A DNA stretch of 64,000 nt, taken from Ascidiella aspersa (taxonomy: Eukaryota). Position 1 is the first letter of the stretch. The number at the start of each line of letters is the position of its first letter. Positions 5,241-60,188 of this stretch are shown piece by piece. The DNA is taken from assembly GCA_963924565.1 (NCBI GenBank), contig OZ004610.1, forward strand, positions 6,076,001 to 6,140,000. Reading direction: 5' to 3'. The notes beneath the pieces were generated by a model, which was not told where the DNA came from, made no database searches, and was given only the letters and a program-made list of their open reading frames with translations. The position numbers were made by a program, and so were the translations under genes.

Positions 5241-8200
5241 TTACGAGCTGATACAACTGGAACTGAAACATAAAAGGTATTTGAGACTGGAAAAGTGTAG
5301 ATGTGGCCTATGTATGCAGAGCCGCACAAAACATTTGCTGGTGTATTTTTATAGAAGCTTTAACTTGGTTGCTAAGTTTTTCAAGAGGTGAAACAAACAA
5401 AAGACTATAGTAGGCTATAAATAACCTTAAGGCCTTGAAATGTGAAAAATTACATTATTTACTCCAAACTTTTATTTTTTCGTTAAACAAGACAAGAAAC
5501 ATCCTTGGTTTTTGGTTTGAGCGTTTATCAGTCAAAACAAAAAAGTAGCCTACTACTGATAGGTTTAGGACCAGGTACTGTATTGCCCTTTTTATTTGTG
5601 ACGCCCTTGGCCCTTTTATACACTCTGTTGAATCTTTCTTATTACTTCTATTATCTAAACTTAATTCCGCGAAAGGATAACCCAACTTTTAAAATTCGAC
5701 TCAGTAACAAATCTTATTTCATGCAAACTCACTAATACGCGTTGTAGTAGTAGCCGTAGCTGGACTGCTGCGGGTAGCACGCCTTCCAGGTGTAATAGCT
5801 GCCGAAGCGATATGAAGGCATGTAGAACTGGGCCTGTCTGCAGCGCGCAGTACAGCTGTAGTGCAGCACCAGTTTGGCGCTGGCGTCGGTCCAGTAGGAA
5901 TCCAAACCGCTAGTTACAGACTTGCAGTAGATGACCAGCTTCTCGGCGTAGGCCTGAACCAGTTCCATTACCTCTTCAGGCAGATTTTCACCGTGGTAGG
6001 CAGTCAGCATAGCGATGTAGTTCTTGAAGTGCGAAAGCTTGGCCTATGAACGAGCGCATTCGTAAGTTTAATTCTGTGCGAGTTTGGTTTCTCAATGGTC
6101 ACGTTTACATAAGTAATGTCGTATTATAAGATGCCGAATCACAAAAGCTCTAAAATGACGCCGATGCATTTCTATTATACCACGCGTAAGCGGTGTAGTG
6201 CTGTTCTTGCCAAACTTATAATACTAGATTTAAACCAAATAAAAACAGTGTTGTAAGGAAGGTGCAAATAAGCAATTATTTCGGACAAATGACAACTCAA
6301 ATTGCATTCTACAGCCAAGCGCGTGATATCGTATTGCATTTTTATCATTTTGAAGCCTAATGACTTAAGGTTATGGTTAGACCTGGACCAGTACTTTCGT
6401 TACCACGTTGAAAATTAATAAAGAATTGTTGGAAACGTTTAAAATATGCTAGCTATACAGCATTGGCTATGATATTACTTCTACTTTGCCACAACAAATG
6501 ACATTTCCAAGCCCTTCCAGTCAAGCTCGACAGCACTCACAGCGGACATCGACGCAATCATGGCGCTCCGCTGGGAGGCGTGCTGCCCGTCGAGCTTCTT
6601 CTTATAGTCGGCGATTCTGGCGGCGCGGTCGGTCAGGCAGGAAGCGTAAGAGGCCACGACACGGTCCAAATAGGACTGTACGTGCTGACGGAAGCGCTCG
6701 ATACTGGCGCTAAACTTGCTCGCACAGTCGACGATAATTTGGGCGAGTTTCTCCTGGTAGTCGGCCACCGTTTTGTTGTACAGCTCAGCCAGCTCCTTGG
6801 TGCAGTCGGCGATTTGCGCCTTCTGGTCGGCGGTTAGCTCTAGGCTCTTGTTCCTGCATATCGATCAGCGGAAGAGATTTCACAAATGCGAATGCCAAAA
6901 AAACAAGCTCATTTAAAGCATAAAGCTTGTAGTTATAAAACGAATATCAAAGCTTGTACAAATGAAATTGGCTTTCGTTAGCGTATCAAGTAGCACAATC
7001 CTTATTGAAAGCGCATTTGTTACACAGAGAGGAATTCGATGTGTTGGTTAAGATCCCTTTTTATCTATGCATTACAAAAGATTGTACAAATTTAATTTCA
7101 ATCAACAAACTGGTTATGCCGCTGTGGCTCGATAGATATACCCTAAAGAAAACGTGTGATCATGTATATTATTATGGGTTTTACTTGAATATACACGTCA
7201 GCTGAACAGTTGTCGGCAAGCAGAAATTATTCAAGATAGCACTCATGCAATTTAAAAATTTTGATTTAGGGTCTCAAAAGTTTTGATTTAGTTTATTAAT
7301 CCATTGTGATAAGAATATTCGCGGAATACAGGTGAAACACTACTGTCTAAAAACCGAAACATTCCTTTGCTTCGTAACGCTACAAAAGAATCCTGAATTT
7401 GTTGCGGTAATAGAACTTTTACCCAACACTGTTCAGGACGTAAGCTTGACATGCCCGCAATCTTGAATGTGAAATCGTGCATTTAAAATATGCATCGGTA
7501 TTGAACGCGCTACTAATCCCCCCTCTCCCCCTCAAAAAATAATCGAGTTCACGACTGGTCCCGTCAACGAACTATATTCATCTTACAAACCTACCAGGCC
7601 TGGAAGGTTTTGACTTTGCTGTCAATCACAAAGGCGTGTCTGGCTTTGACGATTTCCTTGTACTTGTTGTAGTATTCGACGTGGTATTGGACCCACTTGG
7701 CCTTCCACGCAGCAAAGTCGACCACAAACTTGGCCACAGCCTCGTCCAATTTTTTCTGCAATTCGGACTTCACGTCGGCCACCGGCTTGTTTAAGGTGTC
7801 TGAGCAGAACAAAACAACGTAAATTTCCAGATACTGACCTACACGTTCCCTGACTAATGTAAGTGCCCTTTGTTTCGTAAAACGTTATATTGGTAAAATT
7901 GTGAATTTTATTGCATATATATTTTAATGCTCAGAGGTTAAACGCAAAGTAGCTAACTGTTGTAATAAGTAAAAATAAGAGGCGTGAGGTGAATTTACCA
8001 GTCTCAAAAATAACACAAAAACGTGGGTGTAATCGTAGGCTATATGTATGACAAGTAGTTGTAGTATTTGCAAACGCGGAATGTTAGTGACACGGAAGAA
8101 AAGGCATACATCCAGTTTATGGTTAAACAACTTGGTTTGTGGGTAGGCTACTCTTTTTATTTTGGCAGTCAAAAAACACCCCAAAACTTGCAAAACCTCA

Positions 8201-11200
8201 AAATCTTTATTTGTTTTTTTCTAGTTCTTTTAGAGGCATTAGACTGCTTAGCAGTAACCGAGACTGCATCAAACTTTATTTATATTTATCATTCGATGCC
8301 AGTATAGAGCTGGGATGAATGTATAATAATGTTTTTTTCTTGGAACGCATAAAGATTTTTAGGGGGGCAAATCTCATTTTTATAGGAGGTTTTGACAAGA
8401 ATATTGCAAAAAGTTAACGCAATCGGTGAGAAAAACGTCGTTTCTACGTAGCTGAAGTTCAAAGTTTGGAAATCCAAAATAATGCACTTTTCGTAACAAA
8501 ATTGTTTAAAAAATAGCAAAACGGGTTACGATTATAGGACACGCCCGTAAATCATTTGACGAACTGCTCCTTAAAAATAGAGAAATCCTTCTTTGCATAA
8601 ACTTTTGCAACGAGTGTTTTAGTATGATCATCAAGCAGTGGCTTATAGTGACATTTGCACAAAATTGCTATTCTTTTAACACTTACTAAGATCACAAGTC
8701 TTAAGTCCGTTGTAGGTAATTTTGCGCCAGTTGAAGCTGAACTTTCCCATGGAGTAGTTCACGTACTTGTAGCTGCTGTGCTGATACCAACGTCCAAGCT
8801 TTTGACTGAAAACAGTATGCGTTGTCACGTTAAAAATGCGGTAGTTAGGCTATGCGTGCCGTGGCACATAATAGTTGAAAAGTACTAAAAATGATGACAT
8901 TTTACTATTCAAGGATTGTTTGTTTGTGATATTTTTTTATATTTTTTGTAGATCTATGGTCGGCAAAAAGTGATTTCAAATAACTGGTGATAACAAGGGA
9001 ATTAGTGATTTTACACAATTCGCAACAAACACACTTGATTAAATATGAAGAGCTAAATTTTCGACTATATTCGAGTCGGCATGTTTTAATAGAATAAGAA
9101 TGTTTGTCTTTGCGAAATGCAAAACCAGATTCATTTTATTATTTTTTCAGGTTGTTTCAAATCCGGGCCCACACTAGTTAATTTAGAAATGAAACTTGCC
9201 TCAAATTTGTATATTTGCGTCTTATTTGAAGTTTTCGAACACTGTTAACGTATTATAAGCAAGTAAGTTTAGCATAATATACAAATTATAGCTCGAGACT
9301 TTTCAAGTGTGTGTTGGGATATTTAAGCGCCCGGTTTAGATAGATTACCATCCGTTGTAGTAGTAGGCACGGTAGAACTTCAGGTAGGAGTTGGATAGGT
9401 AGCAGCGGTAGGCGCAAGTGTAGAATCCGAGCAATGTGTCTTTGGCAACGAGCATCTGCTTCGTATAGGCCGCCACCATATCCCTGATCTTAAACATTTC
9501 GTGCTTGGCGAAAACAACGATCACTCGATCGACGATGCTGGTATCGCTATCTGGGTTACCTTAAAAAAATGCTGGACTTTGTCAGACATGTGGCCATTTG
9601 GGCAATGCGCGTTTTTAGATCTCTTTATGTTTAGGTATTTTGTTTTCAATTTAAAAAAATTCTAAAAATAATAAAAATTCGCCAATCGTAAACTCTAAAA
9701 AATATTCTACTATATATGATTAGCCATTTTAATCGATCAATAAAAAACAAAACAAATCAAATTTAAAAATAATGGTTATTCAAAAGTTTTCAACAAAATA
9801 TCACTTTATACAATTGTTTTAAAAATACCACCATTAAGGCTTTTTTTCCTAAAGTTTTTTTTTTTTCCAAAAGCAATTAAAGGTCTTAATTATTTATTTG
9901 TAGCAATGACTGTTAGACAATAAGAAGTTAAGGTTTAATTTATTTATGTTATACAATATGCCTGTGGTATCAAACGTCACCTACTAATCCGATATAGAAT
10001 GCAACAAAGTATACTTACAGTCAAGTTTTACAAGGACCTCTTTGTACTTTTGGGACCTGGTCTTGAGTATGGCGAGGAGATACTTATAGTAGTTGATGGT
10101 GTAGTCCTTGATCTTTTTGTTGATTTCCTTTTCGTAATCGAGGATTTTTGCGGCGCGGGTTGCAAGGCACTTCGCGGCACTACAGAGGTGTTAACAAATA
10201 CATTTGCAGGACTGTGTAGCAGACAGTTAGTTACATAGACTTTGTATTGTGTATGGCAGTGCTATTCAAACTTTTTTTGGTTCGGTGAACCTTGAAGGTT
10301 TTGTGACAAATTCATGCACCCTGTTTACTTAAAAGGCAAACTGAGTAAAAAGCGATCTAACAAATCATTATGCTTAACAATATTATCATGTTAATTAAAC
10401 CGAGCGGAGCTGCCGAAGTTTTAAACACTGTCGGTGAGAGTTCGATTATGGCTGCAGGCTGCTTGCGAGTTCTACTACATGTCATAACACAGCATTCAGT
10501 GTTAAACATTAATATTTCATAAAAAATAGTGTGATGCACCCTTATATACCTGTTTGTTCTGGGGCACCCTATTCATACTTTGATGCATACTAGGGTACAC
10601 TGTGCACACCAGTTAAAGAGCACTGATGTATGGTATAATGCCACCTAAGGCATTAAAAATTGTCATGGCAAATTCGAGTAAAGTGATTTTATTTGTAACT
10701 GAATTGTATGAACTTTTCCATTTCGACCTTTGATCAATTATAAAATATTACGATGACACAAAATGTAAAATAAAGTACAACACACTCACAATATTAAATT
10801 GTTAAATTAAACAAATATACTAAAAACAGTTTACTGTAAAGCCAATAAACCCTTCAAAGTAGTAAAAATAACTTCGAAGATTGATTTTCGATAACAATGT
10901 TTTTAGAAAGCAACAGGCAACAAATAATAACAATTATATAAATGATCACTGCATTGACGTTAGTTCAAACATAGCTTGAATATAGCTTGAAAGAGAATAA
11001 ATCAGCAAAACTGGAGCGAGGTCTTTGAAAAGAGTTTGTCAGTGTTTCGCCGTCCAATTTTGGAATGCTGTTGTTCACTGGCATTTTTACTTGGTTGACA
11101 GGAATTTGTGCAAGTAATAATACTGTTTGGGTCACAATTTTACATTATTTCAAGTTTTTCCATTAATTTGTACCACGCTTTATAAATGTGATAATCTGCG

Positions 11201-13965: not shown

Positions 13966-14025
13966 GATGGTCCCTGAGAATTTTTCGTGGCGCGATTCCC
14001 AGCGGCAAAGAAATAATAATAGTCA

Positions 14026-14061
14026 AACTAACGATGGCTTGGTAAGTGGGGGGCTCTTATA
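14026..14061 (-). promoter_or_regulatory. Core promoter of P (TATAAGA + TTAGTT initiator)
   Basis: TATAAGA at 14061-14055 and an Inr-like TTAGTT ~32 nt downstream, ~65 nt before the ATG at 13965. Confidence 0.6.
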
Positions 14062-15468: not shown

Positions 15469-15636
15469 CGAGTCATTTCGCCACTCGCAAAGTGTGCGCG
15501 TCGCACGCTACGAGTTTCGCTAAACACACAAGCCTCCCTGCATGCGTCAAGCTCGCCTCTCATGCCCACGAGATCCCACTTATGCTAAAAAAACCTGAAC
15601 CAATGCGATGACAGCTCGGCCCATGCAAACATGTTG
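15469..15636. promoter_or_regulatory. Conserved non-coding element (candidate enhancer) upstream of P
   Basis: Clearly aligns with 21876-22038, 29289-29451, 35718-35855 and (inverted) 39170-39308. Shared blocks TACGAGTTTCGCTAAACACACAAG, GCGTCAAGCTCGCCTCTCATG and ATGCAAACATG, although P introns and flanks do not align with the array. Confidence 0.6.
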
Positions 15637-15678
15637 ATCACGCCTCATAAAAAAAACAAAAAACAATCCGTTTTAAAG

Positions 15679-16844: not shown

Positions 16845-16983
16845 TTTAATGGTGAAAATAACGGCCCAAATAGACGTTAAAAGCGACATGCTTTATTTTC
16901 AAACGTTTCGGCAATTTCATGTCGCTTTAAAATGAAGCATGTCGCTTTCAACGTCTATTTGGGCCGTTATTTTCACCATTAAA
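16845..16983. repeat. Long inverted repeat / foldback (~55-bp arms, ~29-nt loop)
   Basis: 16845-16899 is the reverse complement of 16929-16983 with 2 mismatches. Confidence 0.9.
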
Positions 16984-19606: not shown

Positions 19607-20380
19607 TTAGGCGCAGTATCTGTAGTATCCGCTGCAATACCTGACACGGTAACTACAGGTGCGTCTGCAAAACAAAAGAATAAAATTAAATGAAGTAAAC
19701 AATGGAAAATTAACCACGGTAAAAGTCGTTTTACAATGCATGCAAACAGTGCGAAAATTTAACGTTTAAAATAAATCGCTGTGACACAATATTACGTGTT
19801 AAAAGTTCCATTCGTTTTAATTATAAGTTAATTAAAGGTTGGCGTACAATTTTAAAAGCAAAAATGTGGTTCACATAGCAAAATCTGGACCCGAGTAACA
19901 CCATGTAAAACTACCCGATTAGCGAGTCCGACATTCACCTGCGCATGCGCAGTACCAAATTTAATACCTGATATTGCCGCCAACTGTAAATTGTTAAGTA
20001 GCAAATGGTGGATATTTTCCAACCATGTGGCATTAGTGTTTGAATTCTATGATATTCTTATAGGGATTGCCAAAAATCCATCTTAATTTAGTTTTGTAAA
20101 TTGGTAAAATACATGCTCTAGGGTCGGATTCGGTACTCGAAGAAATCGCACATTGAGCCGCAGTCTGACTCGAGACTAGGGAACCGGATTCGGGTTTATT
20201 TTATGGTCGGGGGTGGGACTCGGGAATTAAACTCGGGTTATTTTTAATCAATCCTCAGCCTAGTAGCAAAGTGCGACTTACACATATCTGGTGTAGCAGT
20301 AGCTGTAGGAGTTCACACAAGGAAGTGTGAATTTCCAGCTGAAGTAGCTTCCGTAGCAGAATCTCGGCATACAGAATCTT
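19607..20380 (-). pseudogene. psiL: 3' remnant of the family gene (last ~100 bp of exon 10 + exon 11) fused directly to upstream promoter sequence
   Basis: Exon 11 at 19664-19607 and exon 10 fragment at 20380-20282 (RFCMPRFCYGSYFSWKFTLPCVNSYSYCYTRYV). At 20381 the sequence switches to promoter-type DNA matching ~27523. TATA, exons 1-9 and most of exon 10 are absent. Confidence 0.88.
19835..20262. mobile_element. Probable MITE with ACTCGG/CCGAGT subterminal repeats inserted in the psiL intron
   Basis: About 430 bp of extra sequence relative to intron 10 of intact copies. Repeated ACTCGG/CCGAGT/CGGATTCGG motifs in inverted orientation at the two ends. Boundaries approximate. Confidence 0.5.
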
Positions 20381-21128
20381 ATCTCTTGCTTATCTCTTTT
20401 TCCATGTTGAGTCCCGATTAGACAAACAGGACACACCATACGGATATGATTTGTTTTCCCGCTTCGTACAAATTGATTCAATGATGTTGTAACAAGACAA
20501 AATATTTGGTAACTTGTCGACGAAAGAAGTACACTTGCTGTTCCAAGTTTTTTAACATCTCGTTTTCGAGGTGAGTACCTCATCCGCAATTTACTGACTG
20601 AAGAGGGTCTGATAATTGGTCTACAAGGACACACTTGTTAATCCGACAATCTGCAAAATTTAGATGTGGTTGTTGCAATAACAAAGAAGCGCAATCATCG
20701 TCTCTCTGTAGTGCTGAAGTAGTGATTATGCAAACAGGATGCGCATATGGATATGATCTGTTTTCCCGCAGCGTTCCATGTTAACCAAATCATGTTAGTC
20801 AAATTTAAAATATTGGTAGCTACTGCTTATTGCTACGGCAATAAATGAAGTACACTCTAATTATTCAATGTACACACATTCAAGTTTGTTTAACATAACG
20901 TTTGCGTGTTAAATGTATCATGGCTTGTGCAAAAATCACATCCAGATCGATTTGGTCTGTTTAGTTGCAATTTTGTCGTCCGGTGTTTACTCATAGGTAT
21001 TCGCTCGGATACTTGAAGTGGTGACATCGATGAATGTTCTTCAGTTTGTTCGTCGAATGTCGCGTTTCGAAATGTCAATTTGCGTCACTTGCAATTTTTG
21101 ATGCTTTCTGTGTGTGGTTAGTTTTAAC

Positions 21129-27196: not shown

Positions 27197-27238
27197 CTTT
27201 GTTTCTCTTCCAATTGAATCTCTTCCTTGGGTAGAGCT

Positions 27239-27273
27239 GAATGATTTGCAGTGAGCGCTGCAGAACTTTTATA
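27239..27273 (-). promoter_or_regulatory. TATA box + initiator of copy A
   Basis: TATAAAA 27273-27267 and TCATTC, with its A 31 nt from the TATA start. Confidence 0.75.
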
Positions 27274-34374: not shown

Positions 34375-34409
34375 GAATGATTTGCATTGAGCGCTGCTGG
34401 ACTTTTATA
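34375..34409 (-). promoter_or_regulatory. TATA box + initiator of copy B
   Basis: TATAAAA 34409-34403, TCATTC 34380-34375. Confidence 0.75.
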
Positions 34410-36749: not shown

Positions 36750-37587
36750 AAACAACAGTACTGAATTGACTGATGAACAAAAGGCAAAAATCGCAACCCT
36801 TACCCAGGAATTGAAGGAAAAAATGGAAACAGCAATTGCTGAGTACACTGCAAAATTGTTGGCTAGTCTCCTCGAATGCGCTGCAAAGTTGAATGCTTGG
36901 CCACTCGAATTACGAAGATTGCTGATTACAAGAAGAAACTTGAAGATAGCGGCGACAAACAAAGATCAGATTTGTTGGATTCTTTGGTCAAGGTTCGTAA
37001 AAATCATCTTTTAGCAAAAGTTTAAATTTGTCTTATATAATTAGAGAATTAGTAACTTGTTATATTTCTATTATTGTGATATAAACTCTTGTGTGTTTGC
37101 AGACCAAGAATGCTTTCTGGAAGACATACGTTGCAATGTATGAGTTCCATCACGGCGAAACTCGTCCCGATTCGGTCAACGTGCTTGGTCTTGCTTACGC
37201 TGATAAGCTGGTGATCTACTGCAAAGTTGGTGCTTCACTACACTTGCTGCGCCAAGTGTTACGTGGGAAGATTCTGTATGCCGAGATTCTGCTACGGAAG
37301 CTACTTCAGCTGGAAGTTCACACTTCCTTGTGTTAATTCCTACAGCTACTGCTACACCAGATATGTGTAAGTTTTTGCGTTTTAATGATACACTTTTTTG
37401 TGTATCATTATTTGATACGCAAATCAGTAACTAAAATTTCGAACTTATAATATCGCACTGTTTTCATGTGACGTAATGTAACTTTTAAAATTGTTTGCTG
37501 CTGTTGATGTTTCTTTTTTTGTTTTGCAGACGCACCTGCAGTTACCGTGTCAGGTATTGCAGCGGATACTACAGATACTGCGCCTAA
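36750..37587 (+). pseudogene. psiR: 3' remnant (exons 9-11) with two frameshifting deletions
   Basis: Exon 9 starts at 36750 and lacks 70 bp (AAGTT|GAATGC). Exon 10 lacks 47 bp (TGCAA|AGTTGG). Exon 11 ends at stop 37585-37587. Exons 1-8 are absent. Confidence 0.9.
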
Positions 37588-41985: not shown

Positions 41986-42020
41986 TATAAAAGTCCAGCA
42001 GCGATCAATGCAAATCATTC
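41986..42020 (+). promoter_or_regulatory. TATA box + initiator of copy C
   Basis: TATAAAA 41986-41992, TCATTC 42015-42020. Confidence 0.75.
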
Positions 42021-42062
42021 AGCTCTACCCAAGGAAGAGATTCAATTGGAAGAGAAACAAAG

Positions 42063-45000: not shown

Positions 45001-45490
45001 TTGGTAATGCTTATGCTGATAAGCTGGTGATCTATTGCAACTCGATCCTTGCTGAGTTCGATGCCCACTGGACAGACGTCCTCGACAAGTTGGTGCTTCA
45101 CTACACTTGCTGCGCCAAGTGCTACGTGGGAAGATTCTGTATGCCGAGATTCTGCTACGGAAGCTACGTCAGCTGGAAATTCACACTTCCTTGTGTTAAC
45201 TCCTACAGCTACTGTTACACCAGATATGTGTAAGTTGTTTTGTTTAAATTACACAATTTTTTGCTTTAAAACAACAATCAAAAACTAATTTGTAGTAAAA
45301 ACAAATATATCTTTTAACGCGTAATATTGTCGCAGAATAATTTATTTCGAACTTATTGCACTGTTTGCATGTGACGTAATGTAACTTTTAAAATTGGTTG
45401 CTACATTTGATATTTCTTATTTTGTTTTGCAGACGCACCTGCAGTTACCGTGTCAGGTATTGCAGCGGATACTACAGATACTGCGCCTAA
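42063..45490 (+). pseudogene. Copy C: full 11-exon copy with premature stop in exon 4. Exons 42063-42098, 42181-42364, 42497-42677, 42874-43047, 43164-43324, 43393-43606, 43797-43918, 44144-44348, 44496-44808, 44919-45229, 45433-45490
   Basis: In-frame AGT TAA GCA at 42962-42964, where A, B, D and E read AGT AAA GCA (Lys). Otherwise intact. Could be a null allele or a base-call error. Confidence 0.75.
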
Positions 45491-48400
45491 CCTTGAAATC
45501 AAGAAAAGTAGCGCATTCCGAATGCCCGTAGTAATATAAAAAATAAATTCATCCAGAAAATACTTGTGTGTTGTTTTAGTTTGCTTCGTTACGCGAAGAT
45601 TTATCTGAAATATTATTGGTTTTTGTCTGAAACAATTCTCCAGAAATAAAGTATTTTAAAGGGTAAAATGAATGTCTTGCCAAATTTTGAGCACTTGGTG
45701 GCCAAGATTAAACAACAAGATACTCTTAGGGTCAATCGACAAATACCTTAAACGAACTTTGGCAAACCGCAATCCTCTGGTCTCTAAAATGTTTACGCTG
45801 CCGGTGAAAAACAATTAATTTTAATTTAAATCAAAAAATACATTCTTGGTTTATTCTATGAGACCAATGACACTTCATATTTACCGTATTTACAAACAGG
45901 AAGTTTCGTAAAATAAACAGAAAATTAAAGAATTTCATAACATATAACATATTTAAAGACAGACATATTTGATAACAATGTAAATAAGGTTAATTTTTAC
46001 GGTCCGCTTAATACATGAACATTTTTCTCTAAAAAACGTAAATGGATTAAAACCCAGTCAATTCATTTGCACAACATGGTAAATTCAAGTAGAGTGATTT
46101 TGAATAAATAGCAAGTCTCAATCCAAGTAATTTGCTGTGCAAGTGATAAAAATTATTAAACTTTTAAACCTTATGGGAATTTTACATTGTGATCAACATT
46201 TTAAAACACAAACACAAAAACAAAACAAATAGCAAGTCAACATTTTCACATTTCAGAATTGGCTAAAATAACCCAATTTTATTGAAAAGTATTCAACAAA
46301 AGATCTTAACATACGTGAAGGTATTTGTCTAAATAACTTTGATCAAATCATGTCAACACAGTGACTTAAGTGCAATTAGGTCAAGTCATTAGTTTGCTTT
46401 ATTCGCCAGGACTTTTTAGTTGCGATGAGTAGGTGACACCGGATATAAAAGTATTTGGTTTGTAATCCACGTTTATTAGACGAATTTAAAATCAGTTTTC
46501 GCATAAAACCAGAAAAGTTTACACGACTAAAGCAAATGTTTTAAGGTTTCAAACGAATTTAGCAGGAAATTATTCGGCATTATTTTCGCCAGTGCTTTTC
46601 AGATTTTTCAATCGCCGAGTACTTTTAATTTCCTAATCTAGCGCCGGCTTTAAAGTTTTACAGGGACAAGCAAAATGTTTTTATTTGTCTAATTTTCTGT
46701 ACGCATTTGCAAAATCTGTACAACAAATTCAATCAACACGATGATAAACCAAAGCTTCTGAACTGGCAATGCTGCGCGATGTTCAGGTTTAGTATGGCGT
46801 TGTGTCCCCGGCAAACCCTTCATACTTCCCTGATGTGCTAATGTTATGGTCCTTGGTTTTTAATCCATGTTTTGTTTTTTTAACGAATTTCAAATTAGGT
46901 TTCGCAAAAACTAAGAAAGTTTACAAAGCTACAACAAACGTTTTAAGGGTTCAAACGATTTGAGCAGGAAGTTTGTCGGCATTATTTTCGCCAGTGCTTC
47001 TCACAATTATCAGTCGCCAATTCCTTTTAATTTCCTAAACTAGCACCGACTTGAAGGTTTTACAAAGACAAGCAAAATGTTTTTATTTGTCTGATTTTCC
47101 GTGCGCATTTGTTAACGACAAGGTAATATAGGCCTACTCGCCAGCCCTAAAACACTTTGAACGAGTAACAGTTTATGCAAACCCTGGCTTAAATATTAGT
47201 GTCAATAACAATATTTGGTAACACAATATGTGCTAAACTGTTTGGTAACATTTCAATATTATAGAATGAAAAGTAGATGTAAAATCTGTGATGGAAGACC
47301 AGTTGATCACCAATATAACTTATCGCTTGAGTTAAAACAAACCACACACAGTTAGCATAAAAAATTACTAGTGACGTACATTAACTTTTCGAAACGCGAC
47401 ATTCGACCAACAAACTGAAGAAAGTCATCGACGTCACCACTTCAAGCATCCGAACGAATATCGATGAGTAAACACTGGGCGACAAAATTGCAACTAAACA
47501 AACCAAATCGTCGTGGTGTGTTTTTTTAGGACAAACCATGAGCCACTCAACACGAAATCGCAATGTTAAACGATTAAAATACACCGAAGAATTTGAGTGT
47601 ACTTCAATTGTTGCCTTAGTGTCTCAGTATTTTTTTACTGACATCAATTGCAGCGGACTATGGGTAAGCACATCATATCCGCATTTATGTGCTGTATGCA
47701 TAATCACTAATTCAAAGATGTAGAGAGAAAGAAATTTCACGACTTTGGTATTGCATTAACCCAACTTAAATTTTAGCAGGCCGATAAATATTTGTGCCTT
47801 TGTAGAGTGAACTCTCTGGCCTTTCAAACATATCCCTGTCCGGTGAATCAATTGATCTTGTACTATTCGCCAAGTCTACCGTAGTTTTTCAAATATTTTA
47901 ATGAATGGATAAGTGGCTAAACAATTTTTTAACTTGTGTTCCACTAAGAAAACAACAAAACACGAATGGCACTTCCCAAACTTATAATTCAAAATCAAAC
48001 ATTATTTCTAAAGGGAAACTATTATAAATGTAAAAGTTGATGCATAAATCAAATACATTTTATATTTTTATGAGTAGGCCTATGTACATCTTGTTGAAAC
48101 ATGCTTTGGATTGGTTAAATACCGTAGGATCGTATAAGTGGGTGTGTAATTTGCACGCATTAAACACTTTTTCACAGTCTATATCAGATACAAAATAAAG
48201 CAAATTATGATAGGAGTTCTACAAATCACTTCACCTAAAAAGCTTTATAAATCACTAAATGCACCAAAATGTCAAATAAGCCATATTTTCAAACGCGATA
48301 TACTTCTACCAAGTCAAATAGGATGATCAGTATCCCCACTTTAATTATGTAAACAAATATCTCGAGTAAACACTGAACGGAACAAGTACAACTAATCATA

Positions 48401-49323
48401 CCAAAATGACAAGGTGTGTTTTTTGCTCAAACCATAAGAGCCTTTGCAGTCAGCGACCTTTGAAAAAACACTCAATACGCAAACACAAAGTAAAACGGTT
48501 TAAATTTATGTACATTGGAGAACTCGAGTGTACTTTATCTGTTTGCCGCAACTCAATATTTTCATTTTAACGAACATCATTTGATTAATATCTGACGACG
48601 CGGGAAATCAGGCGATATCCGTATTGACTTGATGTTTGCATAGTAACTAATGAGAGATGTAGAGTGACGATAATGCACGATATTGCTATTGCAACAACCA
48701 AACCTAAGGTTTTGCAGTTGGTTGAATAAACAAGTTTGTCTTTGTAGACCGATCATCAGACTCTCAGAAGTTACTTAATGCGAAAGAGGTAGGCCTACTC
48801 AACTCGAAAAATGTGATGTTAACCGCTTTAAAACTTTGAACAACAAGTGTACTTCATTCGTCGTCGGTGTTACCGAATATTTTTGTTCTTACAACATCAT
48901 TGAATCAACTTTGTACATGGCGGGAAAACAGATCATATCCGCATTGTGCATCCTGTTTGTATAATCGGGACTCAACATGATTGCAGTAACTTTTTTGCGA
49001 TGCGGAAAAACAGATCATATCCGTATTGTGTATCCTGTTTGTATAATCGGGACTTCAACACAGGAAGAGAGACGCTAATTGCACGATTTGTTATTGCAGC
49101 ATACAAACTTAAAATCATCCAGGGAACACTTTAATATGACGTATCTCTGTAAAGTGATCTGTTATTTCAGGTGCGGAGAGTCGTTCAGTGTCGTTCACGA
49201 GACGAGTTGTTCCTGCTTGTGGCCACGTGCAATGAACAAGCAAAACATTCAAGTGTCATTAACGATAATATGGATTTGTGATTTTTGGAAGATTAAAGGA
49301 TCTTGTTTACCGCCATGGAAGTC

Positions 49324-49358
49324 TATAAAAGTCCAGCAGCGATCAATGCAAATCATTC
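49324..49358 (+). promoter_or_regulatory. TATA box + initiator of copy D
   Basis: TATAAAA from 49324, TCATTC 49353-49358. Confidence 0.75.
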
Positions 49359-49400
49359 AGCTCTACCCAAGGAAGAGATTCAATTGGAAGAGAAACAAAG

Positions 49401-52400
49401 ATGAAGATTCTGCTAGTTCTTCTGGCGTGCATTGCCGTAAGTTGTTGCCATTTCTTTAGGAGTATTTTCTATATTTTATAGACCTATAGCTTACGATTGT
49501 GGACAATATTTGTTGCAGGCCTCAAATGCATTTTGCACCTACTCCTACTCCTACTCCTACTACTACAGAAGGCAGTTCTGTGTTCAACCCGCACCACAGA
49601 CCTTCTGCTTCAACATCTATTTCAACAGAGCCTGGTGTTCCTCCAAGTTCTACGCTCCCATCCTCAAGTACTACCCAGGAGATGACTGCGGCAAAGATGG
49701 TTGGCAAGGTACAAAATGGCCATGCTTTAGGTTAAAATGTAAAAAGAATAACATATATCAAAACCTAATTATCAATCTCAACTTGTTACAGGGTAGACAA
49801 CAGTTAAATTTCCCTAAGTAAAGATATTACCCGTTTTCATTTGCAGAACGCACCATCGCCGAAGTTGAAACTGAAATGAGCAATTTGCTCAAAGAAAGTC
49901 TTGCCACCATTGTCAGCGAAATGACCACAAAGAAGAACGCGTGGATTGCAGACGTTGAGAAGGTTATTGCTGACTACAAGACCGACTTCGCCACATACAT
50001 CAACAGATACTACGAGTACTATATCTCGTAAGTAGTTCAAACAAATTGGTTTTGTGAACAATAACAGTACCTAGAGTAGTAGATTATTAATATTTGTAGA
50101 TCGGTATATAGATGTTTGTGTAGCGATCACTGGTAATTTGATTTCATGTTGGTGTGCAACAAATTTTTCCACTGGGTCCCTCGTAATAGTGTTATTCAAT
50201 TCCAATCATTTTTGACTTTCTAGAAATGCCAGCACTGACGAAGAGAAGGCCGAACTCGAAGCTAAAAGAGACGCCAGGATTGCCAAATACAACGACGATC
50301 TTGACAACAGTAAAGCAGAGGCTTTGAAGAGCTACAACACCGCGATGGAAGCAAAGATCCAGTCTATTACTGATTACCACACCAAGCTCCTTGAGAAGTA
50401 TATTAATTTGATGTGGTTTTAATTATTGTAAAATCTTATATTTCTAACTTTATGTTATTATATTGCTGATGCTACGAATCAAAAAAAAACTTCAACACAT
50501 ATTTATTTTATAGTGCTGTAAAATGTCTGACAACCAGACAACAAAAAATCAAAGAATACACCGAGCAGTTGACTACCAAAATGACCGAATACGTTGAAAA
50601 ATACTACAAGTATCTTTTGGCGGTCCTCAAGGTTCGTGAAGACCGTTACAGGAAGACACTTGAAGTTGTTCATGGTAAATTGAGATCGCAAATGCCTAAT
50701 CTTTAAATAGAATTAATTCTTAGACGATCATATTTTTGCTAGGGGACTACGCCGAAGGTTTCAAGGATAAAATCGATGCCGTCATCCAGTCGTTCCACGA
50801 CCAAGAATGTATTCTGATCAAGACCAAATCTTTGGAATATTTGGCCAAACTTTTGATCACCAAAGCCAAGCTGGTTTCCTACTACACATGTTCCTACCGC
50901 TGCTACCTCACCAACGGCTGTCTTCAATTCTACAAACGTAGCTACTACAACACTTGGTAAATATATTAAATGAAATTTCCAATTGTTTGTTTCAATTTCT
51001 TGGATTTCGATATATCTACTTAAAAATAACAGTAAAAAACATGTTTTGATTTACCAGAATAAAAATTATGTTTACAAAGGCTCGATTAATATTATAGCAA
51101 TAAACCTACTAACTCGTAAAATGTGACAGAACATTTTACTTTTTAGCCGTTCTTTGGGATGTTGGTGGAGCTACACCAGGTGCTCTTACAAAATATATGG
51201 TTGCTTGTCCGGTTACTCCTACTGCTGGCGTGGCATCAGCTACAAGGGATTGAAGACATGTGACGTTGGTAAGATATAGTTAGTAGTTATATGTCATGGA
51301 CAAGATTTATAACGTAACGCAGATTTTCGCGCTTTATGTTAACTGTAGTTGCACAGTCGTACTGAAAAAATAGAACGATTTTTTGGCTTAATTAAGTGGT
51401 GACGTTATTACGTAACTCATTAGATCATATGTAAAAAACAATGATACAGCAAAGATAAAAAGTTTTCCGTGTCTACAAGTGTTTTTTTTAACAGGAACCA
51501 TTAACAAGAGCGTGGAGGACATCAAAGCAGAACTTGAGGCTCAACTTTCAAAGGCTGTAGGAGAATATACGACAAAATTCAATGAATGGAAGGCGAAGTG
51601 GGCTCAATACCACGTCGATTACATTAAGGCATACAAAGAAATCATCGAGGCAAGACACGCCAACATCATCAAGTCAAAGACTGCTTACTACGTTTGCTTG
51701 TAAGATAAAAATCTTGGTCAATTTCGATTTAAAAAAAATATAACATTTCATAAGAAAACACTCAAAATATTAGTAACCTATGTCAATATTTACGTTATTC
51801 TAAAACATCGCATTTCTATACTCTAAATTTTTGTGTTGCGTTTCAGAAACAACAGTACTGAACTGACTGATGAACAAAAGGCAGCAATCGCAGCCCTTAC
51901 CCAGGAACTGAAGGAAAAAATGGAAACAGCAATTGCTGAGTACACTGCAAAATTGTTGGCTAGTCTCCTCGAATGCGCCGCAAAGTTCGCCAAGAGCATT
52001 GCAGATTACACAACTAAGGTGAACGAAATGATCAAGAGCATCACCGACAAGTACACCGAATGCTTGGCCACTCGCATTACGAAGATTGCTGATTACAAGA
52101 AGAAACTTGAAGATAGCCGCGACAAACAAAGATCAGCTTTGTTGGATTCTTTGGTCAAGGTTCGCAAAAAACATATATTGACAAAAATCTTAATTTGTGT
52201 TATATTATTAGACAATTAACTAATTACCATATTTGTAATATTGTGATCTAAACTATTGTGTGCTTGCAGACCAAGAATGCTTTCTGGAAGACATACGTTG
52301 CAATGTATGAGTTCCATCACGGCGAAACCCTTCCCGATTCGGTCAACGTGCTTGGTAATGCTTATGCTGATAAGCTGGTGATCTATTGCAACTCGATCCT

Positions 52401-52841
52401 TGCTGAGTTCGATGCCCACTGGACAGACGTCCTCGACAAGTTGGTGCTTCACTACACTTGCTGCGCCAAGTGCTACGTGGGAAGATTCTGTATGCCGAGA
52501 TTCTGCTACGGAAGCTACTTCAGCTGGAAATTCACACTTCCTTGTGTTAACTCCTACAGCTACTGTTACACCAGATATGTGTAAGTTGTTTTGTTTAAAT
52601 TACACAATTTTTTGCTTTAAAACAACAATCAAAAACTAATTTGTAGTAAAAACAAATATATCTTTTAACGCGTAATATTGTCGCAGAATAATTTATTTCG
52701 AACTTATTGCACTGTTTGCATGTGACGTAATGTAACTTTTAAAATTGGTTGCTACATTTGATATTTCTTATTTTGTTTTGCAGACGCACCTGCAGTTACC
52801 GTGTCAGGTATTGCAGCGGATACTACAGATACTGCGCCTAA
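49401..52841 (+). CDS. Copy D: secreted Tyr/Cys-rich helical protein, 654 aa, 11 exons
   Basis: Same structure as C, with the Lys codon intact and an extra in-frame TCCTAC (Ser-Tyr) in exon 2. Stop 52839-52841. Confidence 0.9.
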
Positions 52842-55800
52842 CCTTGAAATCAAGAAAAGTAGCGCATTCCGAATGCCCGTAGTAATATAAAAAAAAAATT
52901 CATCCAGAAAATACTTGTGTGTTGTTTTAGTTTGCTTCGTTACGCGAAGATTTATCTGAAATATTATTGGTTTTTGTCTGAAACAATTCTCCAGAAATAA
53001 AGTATTTTAAAGGGTAAAATGAATGTCTTGCCAAATTTTGAGCACTTGGTGGCCAAGATTAAACAACAAGATACTCTTAGGGTCAATCGACAAATACCTT
53101 AAACGAACTTTGGCAAACCGCAATCCTCTGGTCTCTAAAATGTTTACGCTGCCGGTGAAAAACAATTAATTTTAATTTAAATCAAAAAATACATTCTTGG
53201 TTTATTCTATGAGACCAATGACACTTCATATTTACCGTATTTACAAACAGGAAGTTTCGTAAAATAAACAGAAAATTAAAGAATTTCATAACATATAACA
53301 TATTTAAAGACAGACATATTTGATAACAATGTAAATAAGGTTAATTTTTACGGTCCGCTTAATACATGAACATTTTTCTCTAAAAAACGTAAATGGATTA
53401 AAACCCAGTCAATTCATTTGCACAACATGGTAAATTCAAGTAGAGTGATTTTGAATAAATAGCAAGTCTCAATCCAAGTAATTTGCTGTGCAAGTGATAA
53501 TTATTAAACTTTTAAACCTTATGGGAATTTTACATTGTGATCAACATTTTAAAACACAAACACAAAAACAAAACAAATAGCAAGTCAACATTTTCACATT
53601 TCAGAATTGGCTAAAATAACCCAATTTTATTGAAAAGTATTCAACAAAAGATCTTAACATACGTGAAGGTATTTGTCTAAATAACTTTGATCAAATCATG
53701 TCAACACAGTGACTTAAGTGCAATTAGGTCAAGTCATTAGTTTGCTTTATTCGCCAGGACTTTTTAGTTGCGAAGAGTAGGTGACACCGGATATAAAAGT
53801 ATTTGGTTTGTAATCCACGTTTATTAGACGAATTTAAAATCAGTTTTCGCATAAAACCAGAAAAGTTTACACGACTAAAGCAAATGTTTTAAGGTTTCAA
53901 ACGAATTTAGCAGGAAATTATTCGGCATTATTTTCGCCAGTGCTTTTCAGATTTTTCAATCGCCGAGTACTTTTAATTTCCTAATCTAGCGCCGGCTTTA
54001 AAGTTTTACAGGGACAAGCAAAATGTTTTTATTTGTCTAATTTTCTGTACGCATTTGCAAAATCTGTACAACAAATTCAATCAACACGATGATAAACCAA
54101 AGCTTCTGAACTGGCAATGCTGCGCGATGTTCAGGTTCAGTATGGCGTTGTGTCCCCGGCAAACCCTTCATACTTCCCTGATGTGCTAATGTTATGGTCC
54201 TTGGTTTTTAATCCATGTTTTGTTTTTTTAACGAATTTCAAATTAGGTTTCGCAAAAACTAAGAAAGTTTACAAAGCTACAACAAACGTTTTAAGGGTTC
54301 AAACGAATTGAGCAGGAAGTTTGTCGGCATTATTTTCGCCAGTGCTTCTCACAATTATCAGTCGCCAATTCCTTTTAATTTCCTAAACTAGCACCGACTT
54401 GAAGTTTTTACAAAGACAAGCAAAATGTTTTTATTTGTCTGATTTTCCGTGCGCATTTGTTAACGACAAGGTAATATAGGCCTACTCGCCAGCCCTAAAA
54501 CACTTTGAACGAGTAACAGTTTATGCAAACCCTGGCTTAAATATTAGTGTCAATAACAATATTTGGTAACACAATATGTGCTAAACTGTTTGGTAACATT
54601 TCAATATTATAGAATGAAAAGTAGATGTAAAATCTGTGATGGAAGACCAGTTGATCACCAATATAACTTATCGCTTGAGTTAAAACAAACCACACACAGT
54701 TAGCATAAAAAATTACTAGTGACGTACATTAACTTTTCGAAACGCGACATTCGACCAACAAACTGAAGAAAGTCATCGACGTCACCACTTCAAGCATCCG
54801 AACGAATATCGATGAGTAAACACTGGGCGACAAAATTGCAACTAAACAAACCAAATCGTCGTGGTGTGTTTTTTTAGGACAAACCATGAGCCACTCAACA
54901 CGAAATCGCAATGTTAAACGATTAAAATACACCGAAGAATTTGAGTGTACTTCAATTGTTGCCTTAGTGTCTCAGTATTTTTTTACTGACATCAATTGCA
55001 GCGGACTATGGGTAAGCACATCATATCCGCATTTATGTGCTGTATGCATAATCACTAATTCAAAGATGTAGAGAAAAAGAAATTGCACGACTTTGGTATT
55101 GCATTAACCCAACTTAAATTTTAGCAGGCCGATAAATATTTGTGCCTTTGTAGAGTGAACTCTCTGGCCTTTCAAACACATCCCTGTCGGGTGAATCAAT
55201 TGATCTTGTACTATTCGCCAAGTCTACCGTAGTTTTTCAAATATTTTAATGAATGGATAAGTGGCTGAACAATTTTTTAACTTGTGTTCCACTAAGAAAA
55301 CAACAAAACACGAATGGCACTTCCCAAACTTATAATTCAAAATCAAACATTATTTCTAAAGGGAAACTATTATAAATGTAAAAGTTGATGCATAAATCAA
55401 ATACATTTTATATTTTTATGAGTAGGCCTATGTACATCTTGTTGAAACATGCTTTGGATTGGTTAAATACCGTAGGATTGTATAAGTGGGTGTGTAATTT
55501 GCACGCATTAAACACTTTTTCACAGTCTATATCAGATACAAAATAAAGCAAATTATGATAGGAGTTCTACAAATCACTTCACCTAAAAAGCTTTATAAAT
55601 CACTAAATGCACCAAAATGTCAAATAAGCCATATTTTCAAACGCGATATACTTCTACCAAGTCAAATAGGATGATCAGTATCCCCACTTTAATTATGTAA
55701 ACAAATATCTCGAGTAAACACTGAACGGAACAAGTACAACTAATCATACCAAAATGACAAGGTGTGTTTTTTGCTCAAACCATAAGAGCCTTTGCAGTCA

Positions 55801-56671
55801 GCGACCTTTGAAAAAACACTCAATACGCAAACACAAAGTAAAACGGTTTAAATTTATGTACATTGGAGAACTCGAGTGTACTTTATCTGTTTGCCGCAAC
55901 TCAATATTTTCATTTTAACGAACATCATTTGATTAATATCTGACGACGCGGGAAATCAGGCGATATCCGTATTGACTTGATGTTTGCATAGTAACTAATG
56001 AGAGATGTAGAGTGACGATAATGCACGATATTGCTATTGCAACAACCAAACCTAAGGTTTTGCAGTTGGTTGAATAAACAAGTTTGTCTTTGTAGACCGA
56101 TCATCAGACTCTCAGAAGTTACTTAATGCGAAAGAGGTAGGCCTACTCAACTCGAAAAATGTGATGTTAACCGCTTTAAAACTTTGAACAACAAGTGTAC
56201 TTCATTCGTCGTCGGTGTTACCGAATATTTTTTTTCTTACAACATCATTGAATCAACTTTGTACATGGCGGGAAAACAGATCATATCCGCATTGTGCATC
56301 CTGTTTGTATAATCGGGACTCAACATGATTGCAGTAACTTTTTTGCGATGCGGAAAAACAGATCATATCCGTATTGCGTATCCTGTTTGTATAATCGGGA
56401 CTTCAACACAGGACGAGAGACGCTAATTGCACGATTTGTTATTGCAGCATACAAACTTAAAATCATCCAGGGAACACTTTAATATGACGTATCTCTGTAA
56501 AGTGATCTGTTATTTCAGGTGCGGAGAGTCGTTCAGTGTCGTTCACGAGACGAGTTGTTCCTGCTTGTGGCCACGTGCAATGAACAAGCAAAACATTCAA
56601 GTGTCATTAACGATAATATGGATTTGTGATTTTTGCAAGATTAAAGGATCTTGTTTACCGCCATGGAAGTC

Positions 56672-56706
56672 TATAAAAGTCCAGCAGCGATCAATGCAAA
56701 TCATTC
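56672..56706 (+). promoter_or_regulatory. TATA box + initiator of copy E
   Basis: TATAAAA from 56672, TCATTC 56701-56706. Confidence 0.75.
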
Positions 56707-56748
56707 AGCTCTACCCAAGGAAGAGATTCAATTGGAAGAGAAACAAAG

Positions 56749-59700
56749 ATGAAGATTCTGCTAGTTCTTCTGGCGTGCATTGCCGTAAGTTGTTGCCATT
56801 TCTTTAGGAGTATTTTCTATATTTTATAGACCTATAGCTTACGATTGTGGACAATATTTGTTGCAGGCCTCAAATGCATTTTGCACCTACTCCTACTCCT
56901 ACTACTACAGAAGGCAGTTCTGTGTTCAACCCGCACCACAGACCTTCTGCTTCAACATCTATTTCAACAGAGCCTGGTGTTCCTCCAAGTTCTACGCTCC
57001 CATCCTCAAGTACTACCCAGGAGATGACTGCGGCAAAGATGGTTGGCAAGGTACAAAATGGCCATGCTTTAGGTTAAAATGTAAAAAGAATAACATATAT
57101 CAAAACCTAATTATCAATCTCAACTTGTGTTGTTGCAGGGTAGACAACAGTTAAATTTCCCTAAGTAAAGATATTACCCGTTTTCATTTGCAGAACGCAC
57201 AATCGCCGAAGTTGAAACTGAAATGAGCAATTTGCTCAAAGAAAGTCTTGCCACCATTGTCAGCGAAATGACCACAAAGAAGAACGAGTGGATCGCAGAC
57301 GTTGAGAAGGTTATTGCTGACTACAAGACCGACTTCGCCACATACATCAACAGATACTACGAGTACTATATCTCGTAAGTAGTTCAAACAAATTGGTTTT
57401 GTGAACAATAACAGTACCTAGAGTAGTAGATTATTAATATTTGTAGATCGGTATATAGATGTTTGTGTAGCGATCACTGGTAATTTGATTTCATGTTGGT
57501 GTGCAACAAATTTTTCCACTGGGTCCCTCGTAATAGTGTTATTCAATTCCAATCATTTTTGACTTTCTAGAAATGCCAGCACTGACGAAGAGAAGGCCGA
57601 ACTCGAAGCTAAAAGAGACGCCAGGATTGCCAAATACAACGACGATCTTGACAACAGTAAAGCAGAGGCTTTGAAGAGCTACAACACCGCGATGGAAGCA
57701 AAGATCCAGTCTATTACTGATTACCACACCAAGCTCCTTGAGAAGTATATTAATTTGATGTGGTTTTAATTATTGTAAAATCTTATATTTCTAACTTTAT
57801 GTTATTATATTGCTGATGCTACGAATCAAAAAAAAACTTCAACACATATTTATTTTATAGTGCTGTAAAATGTCTGACAACCAGACAACAAAAAATCAAA
57901 GAATACACCGAGCAGTTGACTACCAAAATGACCGAATACGTTGAAAAATACTACAAGTATCTTTTGGCGGTCCTCAAGGTTCGTGAAGACCGTTACAGGA
58001 AGACACTTGAAGTTGTTCATGGTAAATTGAGATCGCAAATGCCTAATCTTTAAATAGAATTAATTCTTAGACGATCATATTTTTGCTAGGGGACTACGCC
58101 GAAGGTTTCAAGGATAAAATCGATGCCGTCATCCAGTCGTTCCACGACCAAGAATGTATTCTGATCAAGACCAAATCTTTGGAATATTTGGCCAAACTTT
58201 TGATCACCAAAGCCAAGCTGGTTTCCTACTACACATGTTCCTACCGCTGCTACCTCACCAACGGCTGTCTTCAATTCTACAAACGTAGCTACTACAACAC
58301 TTGGTAAATATATTAAATGAAATTTCCAATTGTTTGTTTCAATTTCTTGGATTTCGATATATCTACTTAAAAATAACAGTAAAAAACATGTTTTGATTTA
58401 CCAGAATAAAAATTATGTTTACAAAGGCTCGATTAATATTATAGCAATAAACCTACTAACTCGTAAAATGTGACAGAACATTTTACTTTTTAGCCGTTCT
58501 TTGGGATGTTGGTGGAGCTACACCAGGTGCTCTTACAAAATATATGGTTGCTTGTCCGGTTACTCCTACTGCTGGCGTGGCATCAGCTACAAGGGATTGA
58601 AGACATGTGACGTTGGTAAGATATAGTTAGTAGTTATATGTCATGGACAAGATTTATAACGTAACGCAGATTTTCGCGCTTTATGTTAACTGTAGTTGCA
58701 CAGTCGTACTGAAAAAATAGAACGATTTTTTGGCTTAATTAAGTGGTGACGTTATTACGTAACTCATTAGATCATATGTAAAAAACAATGATACAGCAAA
58801 GATAAAAAGTTTTCCGTGTCTACAAGTGTTTTTTTTAACAGGAACCATTAACAAGAGCGTGGAGGACATCAAAGCAGAACTTGAGGCTCAACTTTCAAAG
58901 GCTGTAGGAGAATATACGACAAAATTCAATGAATGGAAGGCGAAGTGGGCTCAATACCACGTCGATTACATTAAGGCATACAAAGAAATCATCGAGGCAA
59001 GACACGCCAACATCATCAAGTCAAAGACTGCTTACTACGTTTGCTTGTAAGATAAAAATCTTGGTCAATTTCGATTAAAAAAAAATATAACATTTCATAA
59101 GAAAACACTCAAAATATTAGTAACCTATGTCAATATTTACGTTATTCTAAAACATCGCATTTCTATACTCTAAATTTTTGTGTTGCGTTTCAGAAACAAC
59201 AGTACTGAACTGACTGATGAACAAAAGGCAGCAATCGCAGCCCTTACCCAGGAACTGAAGGAAAAAATGGAAACAGCAATTGCTGAGTACACTGCAAAAT
59301 TGTTGGCTAGTCTCCTCGAATGCGCCGCAAAGTTCGCCAAGAGCATTGCAGATTACACAACTAAGGTGAACGAAATGATCAAGAGCATCACCGACAAGTA
59401 CATCGAATGCTTGGCCACTCGCATTACGAAGATTGCTGATTACAAGAAGAAACTTGAAGATAGCCGCGACAAACAAAGATCAGCTTTGTTGGATTCTTTG
59501 GTCAAGGTTCGCAAAAAACATATATTGACAAAAATCTTAATTTGTGTTATATTATTAGACAATTAACTAATTACCATATTGGTAATATTGTGATCTAAAC
59601 TATTGTGTGCTTGCAGACCAAGAATGCTTTCTGGAAGACATACGTTGCAATGTATGAGTTCCATCACGGCGAAACCCTTCCCGATTCTGTCAACGTGCTT

Positions 59701-60188
59701 GGTAATGCTTATGCTGATAAGCTGGTGATCTATTGCAACTCGATCCTTGCTGAGTTCGATGCCCACTGGACAGACGTCCTCGACAAGTTGGTGCTTCACT
59801 ACACTTGCTGCGCCAAGTGCTACGTGGGAAGATTCTGTATGCCGAGATTCTGCTACGGAAGCTACTTCAGCTGGAAATTCACACTTCCTTGTGTTAACTC
59901 CTACAGCTACTGTTACACCAGATATGTGTAAGTTGTTTTGTTTAAATTACACAATTTTTTGCTTTAAAACAACAATCAAAAACTAATTTATAGTAAAAAC
60001 AAATATATCTTTTAACGCGTAATATTGTCGCAGAATAATTTATTTCGAACTTATTGCACTGTTTGCATGTGACGTAATGTAACTTTTAAAATTGGTTGCT
60101 ACATTTGATATTTCTTATTTTGTTTTGCAGACGCACCTGCAGTTACCGTGTCAGGTATTGCAGCGGATACTACAGATACTGCGCCTAA
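56749..60188 (+). CDS. Copy E: secreted Tyr/Cys-rich helical protein, 652 aa, 11 exons
   Basis: Same structure, no stop or frameshift seen. Stop 60186-60188, AATAAA at ~60240. Confidence 0.9.

Follow-up and report, generated by a model that had tools for sequence, protein, structure and literature searches.

The gene array in a 64,000-nucleotide (nt) stretch of the Ascidiella aspersa genome (contig OZ004610.1, forward-strand positions 6,076,001 to 6,140,000; hereinafter the window) is shown here, by sequence comparison, to consist of members of the ascidian Ends family, i.e. of the CiEnds1/BAA24830-type endostyle-specific proteins represented in Ciona by CiEnds1 (BAA24829) and its paralog BAA24830. 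The array genes are much-amplified new members of this named, functionally unstudied ascidian family. As the best explanation of the whole, we consider it likely that this Ends-family array encodes a two-rod secreted protein made by the endostyle and that its copies are kept for the supply of feeding mucus.

To place the family, database and fold searches were run with single exons and with database homologs, while joined exons served for composition, alignment and the ratio of nonsynonymous to synonymous substitution rates (dN/dS). Exon 10 of copy B, one of the intact genes, gave only 10 matches among 1.84 billion representative proteins, and no match outside ascidians was returned for this single-exon query. 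Four of the ten are full-length, uncharacterised proteins of 634-670 amino acids (aa) from Ciona savignyi, Clavelina lepadiformis and Styela clava, matched at their C-terminal ends. A search with the C. savignyi protein then returned two Ciona intestinalis proteins recorded as 'endostyle-specific precursor', NP_001107601 (BAA24830, O44237) and NP_001099017 (BAA24829, O44236), both of 650 aa. A homolog search with the family alignment added one new protein only, because low-complexity words filled the candidate list. In all, full-length homologs of 626-670 aa are found in four other ascidians. Exon-10-like family frames also occur on JGI/IMG metagenome contigs of 21 and 11 kb (P0002 and P0004), which presumably derive from ascidians present in the environmental or host-associated material sampled.

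The relationship extends over the whole gene. In tblastn comparisons, eight homologs match copy B collinearly over all exons with E values down to 2e-59, and additionally give cross-matches between the two halves of the protein; the two C. intestinalis precursors, P0040 (BAA24829) and P0035 (BAA24830), each match in 9 stretches that follow exons 2-10 in order, with E values down to 5e-37. Over aligned columns, copy B shares 41-47% identity with the Ciona proteins (approximately 41% for CiEnds1/BAA24830), 36% with those of Clavelina and 30% with those of Styela. All family members contain 7.8-11.6% Tyr and 22-33 Cys, and 27 Tyr and 12 Cys columns of the alignment are conserved. The deposited CiEnds1 sequence (P0040, BAA24829) departs from all of its relatives after approximately residue 590 of the alignment, and its C-terminal 60 residues look like the product of a frameshift in the old cDNA record.

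The Ciona members were reportedly cloned as "endostyle-specific" genes by Ogasawara and Satoh in 1998. Table 5 of a later paper, which lists quantitative PCR (qPCR) primers, gives AB010895 as Endostyle-specific gene 1 (Ends1) and AB010896 as another endostyle-specific gene (PMC7347631), and the primers for these two entries encode peptides present in P0040 (BAA24829) and P0035 (BAA24830), respectively. The genes of the array family are not named in the supplements of two endostyle transcriptome papers. The initial annotation of the window, made from the sequence alone, had called the family unrecognised, a claim that gives way to full-length collinear homologs in four ascidians, two of them named endostyle-specific precursor. 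It had also stated that a full-length match to a characterised family would remove the novelty; the match found is to a family that has a name and a recorded site of expression in Ciona, but whose function is unstudied.

The gene model is confirmed. As placed on copy A, the gene comprises 11 exons and ten introns with GT-AG at every intron (coding sequence of 1959 nt), and lifting these coordinates to the other units yields open frames of 652-654 aa in B, C, D and E. Exon 1 encodes MKILLVLLACIA and exon 2 continues with ASNA/FC, the leader being split by intron 1. Exon identity between the A/B/C and D/E groups is 97.3%, compared with 85-87% for the introns, and dN/dS is 0.11-0.13, showing that the exons are under strong purifying selection. 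The divergent paralog F, built with the intron phases of copy B, has a frame open across 631 codons (1896 nt), and tblastx matches it to copy A in exon coding frames only, with 42-57% aa identity; for the full model, identity is 46% with copy B and 41% with the Ciona relatives P0007 and P0033. Because F matches only in exon frames and the exons are more conserved than the introns, the array genes represent more than chance.

Copy F most likely stops within exon 10, at TAG 5734-5732, with the predicted tail ...YGYYYNAY, and a ...YGYYY-type ending is shared by P0007 and P0033. An earlier model, proposed in the initial annotation, in which F continues into an exon 11 reaching 5241, was rejected, as the sequence there bears no similarity to the family tail.

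RNA evidence comes from one run under the same species label (tissue not recorded), of which approximately 6% was read. It yields 9 reads, all with the first mate on the - strand, and four of these, with 2 start points, span the junction 51699>51847 (exon 8/9, GT..AG). One of the ten predicted splice junctions is thus seen in RNA; the other nine, which none of the 9 reads crosses, are supported by conservation and by full-length homologs of equal length that were annotated independently. The high output in this species supposed by the initial annotation finds no backing in this small number of reads. At five places (51649 and 52357-52386) the reads differ from copy B; three of the five agree with D and E, and the other two occur in no assembled copy. 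The D/E-type bases suggest that the reads probably come from D/E-type copies or their alleles.

The window is a tandem and inverted array of 7.4-kb units, as delineated by a six-frame motif scan and self-comparison. Three head-to-tail units on the + strand (41000-48400, 48327-55748 and 55675-63098) are 99% identical and are followed by the beginning of a fourth at 63025, and two units on the - strand are approximately 88% identical to them. Four copies are intact and near-identical (B, C, D and E), one carries a nonsense codon (A), one is a paralog (F) and two are 3' remnants (Table 1); two further full copies lie directly beyond the right window edge (locus L036). Genome-wide, the exon-10 search gives 41 matches in 308 Mb, with arrays on four contigs (C1, C3, C4 and C7), and the family numbers at least 41 copies, distributed over five or more arrays. 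In the C3 and C7 arrays, the stretches that we examined contain collinear, near-full-length genes. Where found (in the C4, C3 and C7 arrays), exon 1 is the same 36-nt leader with a GTAAGT or GTGAGT donor, preceded by a TATA box at a distance of 72-77 bases (96 in F). In the exon-10 tree, A-E group with F (support 90/87), and each array forms a tight, recent cluster. The C7 genes are compact (approximately 2.5 kb), and in the second C3 array (C3:8133000-8142999) the leader exon lies approximately 3 kb upstream of exon 2, compared with 82 bases in the window array.

Most structural claims of the initial annotation hold up against these results. The 11-exon gene with its leader split at ASNA/FC was rebuilt with GT-AG throughout, and the count of at least five intact genes, one nonsense copy, two remnants and one copy beyond the edge corresponds to B-E plus F, A, R1/R2 and the next unit. 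The tandem amplification is confirmed in the window and extended to the genome, and the proposed TATA promoters are retained in A-E and in F. Of the predicted junctions, spliced reads cross that of exon 8/9 and none of the remaining nine.

Table 1. Features of the window array, given as window positions, and family copies elsewhere in the genome, given by contig.
Feature	Location	Strand	Description
Copy A	42063-45490	+	11 exons; one nonsense codon in exon 4 (TAA 42962-42964; AAA in B); exons otherwise 99.6% identical to B
Copy B	49401-52841	+	intact, 11 exons, 654 aa
Copy B exons	49401-49436, 49519-49708, 49847-50027, 50224-50397, 50514-50674, 50743-50956, 51147-51268, 51495-51699, 51847-52159, 52270-52580, 52784-52841	+	
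Copy C	56749-60188	+	intact, 11 exons, 652 aa
Copy D	34332-30965	-	intact, 11 exons, 652 aa
Copy E	27196-23552	-	intact, 11 exons, 652 aa; exon coordinates lifted from A; all GT-AG, no internal stop
Copy F	13965-5732	-	divergent paralog, 10 coding exons, 631 aa, apparently intact
Copy F exons	13965-13930, 13357-13171, 12315-12135, 11549-11379, 10179-10019, 9559-9349, 8805-8687, 7799-7595, 6853-6541, 6043-5732	-	TAG 5734-5732
Remnant R1	36751-37584	+	part of exon 9, degraded exon 10 with 6 stops, exon 11 (tblastn of copy B; blastn)
Remnant R2	19610-20433	-	3' part of exon 10 and exon 11 only (tblastn of copy B residues 597-636 and 637-654; blastn 83%)
Next unit start	63025-64000	+	promoter region of a further copy; exon 1 approximately 99 bases past the window edge; blastn 97.5% to unit start
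TATA box, copy A	41986-41993	+	same box as B, 77 bases upstream of ATG
TATA box, copy B	49324-49331	+	TATAAAAG; 77 bases upstream of ATG
TATA box, copy C	56672-56679	+	same box as B, 77 bases upstream of ATG
TATA box, copy D	34402-34409	-	same box as B, 77 bases upstream of ATG
TATA box, copy E	27266-27273	-	same box as B, 77 bases upstream of ATG
TATA box, copy F	14054-14061	-	TATAAGAG; 96 bases upstream of ATG; sole upstream block aligning with A-E promoters
This array	C4, 6.08-6.15 Mb		exon-10 search
Two arrays	C3		approximately 14 and 6 copies; exon-10 search
One array	C7		8 copies; exon-10 search
Single copy	C1		exon-10 search
Two distant copies	C4, 11.57 Mb		exon-10 search

Further elements accompany the genes in the window. 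In the promoters, a CAAGTG sequence (Nkx2-1/TTF-1-type core) lies at 49250-49255 in B, 151 bases upstream of ATG, and TGTTTAC (forkhead core) at 49304-49310, 97 bases upstream and just before the TATA box; both are kept in A-E. CACTTG is found at -175 in F and at -226 in a C3 array gene, and is absent within 400 bp in the C7 gene examined. The presence of an Nkx2-1-type core in three of four independent promoters is only weakly above chance; Nkx2-1 and FoxE being published endostyle regulators, we retain the Nkx2-1-type and forkhead cores as a lead.

The spacers contain a block of approximately 260 bp twice per + unit (46451-46709 and 46853-47111, 82% identity), which recurs in the spacers of the - strand units, and no long open frame was seen on scanning the 4-kb intergenic spacers. 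A minor length polymorphism in a codon repeat separates copy A (42193-42228) from copy B (49531-49572), where six additional bases lengthen the N-terminal SYSYSY run by one Ser-Tyr; positions 49530-49571 are flagged as a skipped repeat in the read data. To the left, two open frames at 2117-3679 on the - strand contain a cyclin box, so that a cyclin A/B-type gene flanks the array.

At the protein level, copy B has 67 Tyr (10.2%), 31 Cys and 11 Trp in 654 aa, in close agreement with the hand count of approximately 66 Tyr (10%) and 31 Cys in the initial annotation. The N-terminal 16 residues are predicted to form a secretory leader; its hydrophobic pattern, M-K/R-[ILV]-L-... ending in small residues, is kept in all 11 homologs and in every array of the genome. 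The mature chain would contain 30 Cys, with an isoelectric point (pI) of approximately 8.7 and a mass of approximately 75 kDa. The density of Tyr, Cys and Trp peaks at approximately residues 1-65, 285-345 and 590-654 and is low in the two stretches between, as expected from the three Cys/Tyr/Trp-rich segments and two helical regions that the initial annotation described. Its failure to recognise a domain is likewise upheld: Pfam, searched exon by exon and with the 11 full-length homologs, gave nothing above cut-off.

Alignment of the N-terminal half against the C-terminal half of the family alignment with hhalign gives a probability of 99% and an E value of 8e-18 over 231 columns, indicating an internal two-fold repeat. 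In the model, each half comprises a rod of approximately 220 aa, made of amphipathic helices, and a Cys/Tyr-rich segment after it, with a third such segment at the N-terminus. The hydrophobic periods of the two rod stretches, 3.62 and 3.74 residues, are hendecad-like and bear out the amphipathic helices noted in the initial annotation. Spectral power reaches 60-90 at 3.6-3.62 in rod 1 and 50 at 3.67 in rod 2, compared with 4.8 at 3.50; a heptad coiled-coil fibrous protein of the intermediate-filament or coiled-coil silk kind was rejected on account of this near absence of power at 3.50. Tyr spacing in the rods peaks at 7, 14/15, 22 and 29/30 residues (z-scores of 3.5-5.4 against shuffled sequences), and the rod tyrosines recur within an apolar-x-acidic-Tyr-x-x-Lys-apolar motif. 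Spacing and motif together place the tyrosines in a stripe on the apolar face of hendecad-type helices, and because of this placement the rod tyrosines are probably structural.

An AlphaFold2 model of homolog P0007, computed with the 11-sequence alignment, has a mean predicted local distance difference test score (pLDDT) of 76 and a predicted template modelling score (pTM) of 0.38. Its helices span residues 74-132, 136-242 and 249-292 and then 360-427, 434-546 and 553-595, so that each rod is predicted to consist of three long antiparallel amphipathic helices of approximately 60, 110 and 44 residues. A short hairpin begins the first Cys/Tyr-rich segment that follows a rod. Foldseek gave no match in the PDB at E <= 0.001, and an ESM Atlas search with P0035 gave no usable match. 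A wide VIA-align search returned generic long helical bundles alone, at Z 8.8-10.3, where by the program's own note helical bundles with Z below approximately 13 may mean a common arrangement only. Prediction of a homodimer of module 1 (two copies of P0007 residues 56-352) spoke neither for nor against self-association.

The endostyle is the pharyngeal gland that makes feeding mucus, and it continuously produces a very regular filter net. We expect the array genes to be expressed there because their Ciona homologs are recorded as endostyle-specific, an expectation that replaces the tunic, adhesive organ or egg coat proposed in the initial annotation. Many copies would then be kept to supply the continuous pharyngeal secretion of feeding mucus, and the combination of many near-identical copies with low dN/dS points to a need for output rather than diversity. 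Reasoning from the Ciona records, we think that the endostyle most likely secretes the protein in mass, perhaps as a constituent of the feeding net, and prefer this to a place in the tunic, an adhesive or the egg coat.

How such a protein might act is a more speculative matter. The rods may be building blocks of the net filaments, with disulfides, and perhaps tyrosine links formed by a peroxidase, connecting their Cys/Tyr-rich segments. An assembly of rods end to end into filaments would fit the even Cys count and the presence of a Cys/Tyr-rich segment at either end and between the rods. In a wider and more doubtful form of the proposal, Ends proteins as a class would be the structural units of the ascidian mucous net, rigid two-rod molecules set end to end by disulfides and possibly by tyrosine links made by endostyle peroxidase, with gene number tuned to the rate of net production. 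To our knowledge, in the literature searched, the proteins of the ascidian filter net have not been identified, and Ends genes have been used as endostyle markers since 1998 without structural or functional study.

Several points weigh against the endostyle reading or parts of it. The exon-10 tree does not distinguish orthology of the array to CiEnds1/2 from a separate lineage-specific branch. The sole RNA run for the species, with its 9 reads, has no recorded tissue. In the P0007 model, the remaining Cys/Tyr-rich segments, those beyond the hairpin, are of low confidence. The role of the rods as filament units is a tentative idea.

The composition also invites other readings. With 10% Tyr and 30 Cys in the mature protein, a secretory leader and amplified genes, the product could belong to the tunic, adhesive organ, blood or egg coat as a cross-linked protein for structure or storage, with Tyr serving for 3,4-dihydroxyphenylalanine (DOPA), dityrosine or halogen chemistry and Cys for disulfides. 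We consider this unlikely: the sole family members with recorded expression are named endostyle-specific, and the rod tyrosines, at fixed positions on the apolar face, are mostly probably structural and not free for cross-linking. If the amplification and the divergence of arrays were driven by pathogens, the protein might instead be an antimicrobial or agglutinating component of pharyngeal mucus, and the family is indeed large, lineage-specific and tandemly amplified, and its product basic (pI approximately 8.7). Yet dN/dS of approximately 0.12 and near-identical copies point to dosage and not diversification, and Pfam, Foldseek and VIA-align searches revealed no similarity to known immune families, which makes a defence role highly improbable.

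Two further alternatives accept, or are compatible with, an endostyle product. In one, hendecad helices would open onto lipid or hydrophobic particles as in apolipoproteins, making mucus sticky for oil droplets and cells. The hydrophobic period of 3.6-3.7 would fit; the family profile matches ApoA-I among PDB sequences (E 1.5e-5, profile positions 432-529, approximately 98 residues in the long helix of rod 2), Apolipoprotein A1/A4/E is the top weak Pfam match for exon 9 (E 3e-4), and ascidian nets capture oil droplets (PMC12741560). We nevertheless judge this quite unlikely, since PF01442 scores 21 bits for exon 9 and 17.5 bits for P0007 against a gathering cut-off of 90, the helices lack Pro punctuation, AlphaFold2 packs them as closed bundles, and the similarity is of the sort that biased amphipathic repeats produce. 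In the other, a Tyr-rich protein secreted in an organ that iodinates protein would be a substrate for iodination or a precursor of thyroid hormone, analogous in function to thyroglobulin. In Styela clava, however, the hormone precursor has been shown experimentally to be a 630-kDa protein with Tg1 domains in zones 7-9 (PMC12992692), and Pfam detected neither a Tg1 nor a ChEL domain in the exons or the 11 homologs. Because the Styela precursor is such a Tg1-domain giant, a precursor role for the array protein is very unlikely and was rejected.

We therefore return to the Ends-family array as a source of endostyle secretion. The work provides a structural description of Ends proteins, namely a two-fold repeat, long hendecad helices, a tyrosine stripe and Cys/Tyr-rich segments, and it adds strong purifying selection on Ends-type genes and their presence in approximately 40 copies in several arrays of one ascidian. 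No new kind of system is revealed, and the hypothesis of a net component can now be tested by ordinary methods.

Compared with proteins of known structure, the predicted rods resemble, in their elongated antiparallel helix packing, the C-terminal coiled coil of PLC-beta (6ird), the winter flounder antifreeze protein Maxi (4ke2), ClyA (6mrt) and phasin (5ip0), and neither Foldseek nor VIA-align found a specific fold relative in the PDB. Apolipoproteins A-I, A-IV and E (PF01442) share with the array protein long amphipathic helices, an 11/22-residue rhythm and a recurring acidic-Tyr-x-x-Lys-apolar motif; unlike the array protein, they have Pro breaks and no counterpart of the Cys/Tyr-rich segments, suggesting that the resemblance reflects the same manner of helix building and not family membership or common descent.

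Full-length relatives of 626-670 aa include Ciona LOC100186110/H2YRI4, Clavelina lepadiformis LOC143452698-701 and Styela clava LOC120332193-195, among others. The Clavelina genes have consecutive LOC numbers and the proteins of each species lie on one long contig, so that these genes are apparently clustered like those of the array, and the short ...YGYYY tail of the LOC100186110 group recurs in copy F. These uncharacterised Ciona, Clavelina and Styela groups differ from the array proteins in sequence, with an identity of only 30-47%, and are without described function. CiEnds1 (AB010895/BAA24829/O44236) and its paralog (AB010896/BAA24830/O44237) agree with the array proteins in length (650 aa versus 652-654 aa), leader, collinear architecture, Tyr/Cys richness and two-fold repeat. 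By contrast, searches returned about five genes of the family in Ciona, compared with at least 41 copies in A. aspersa.

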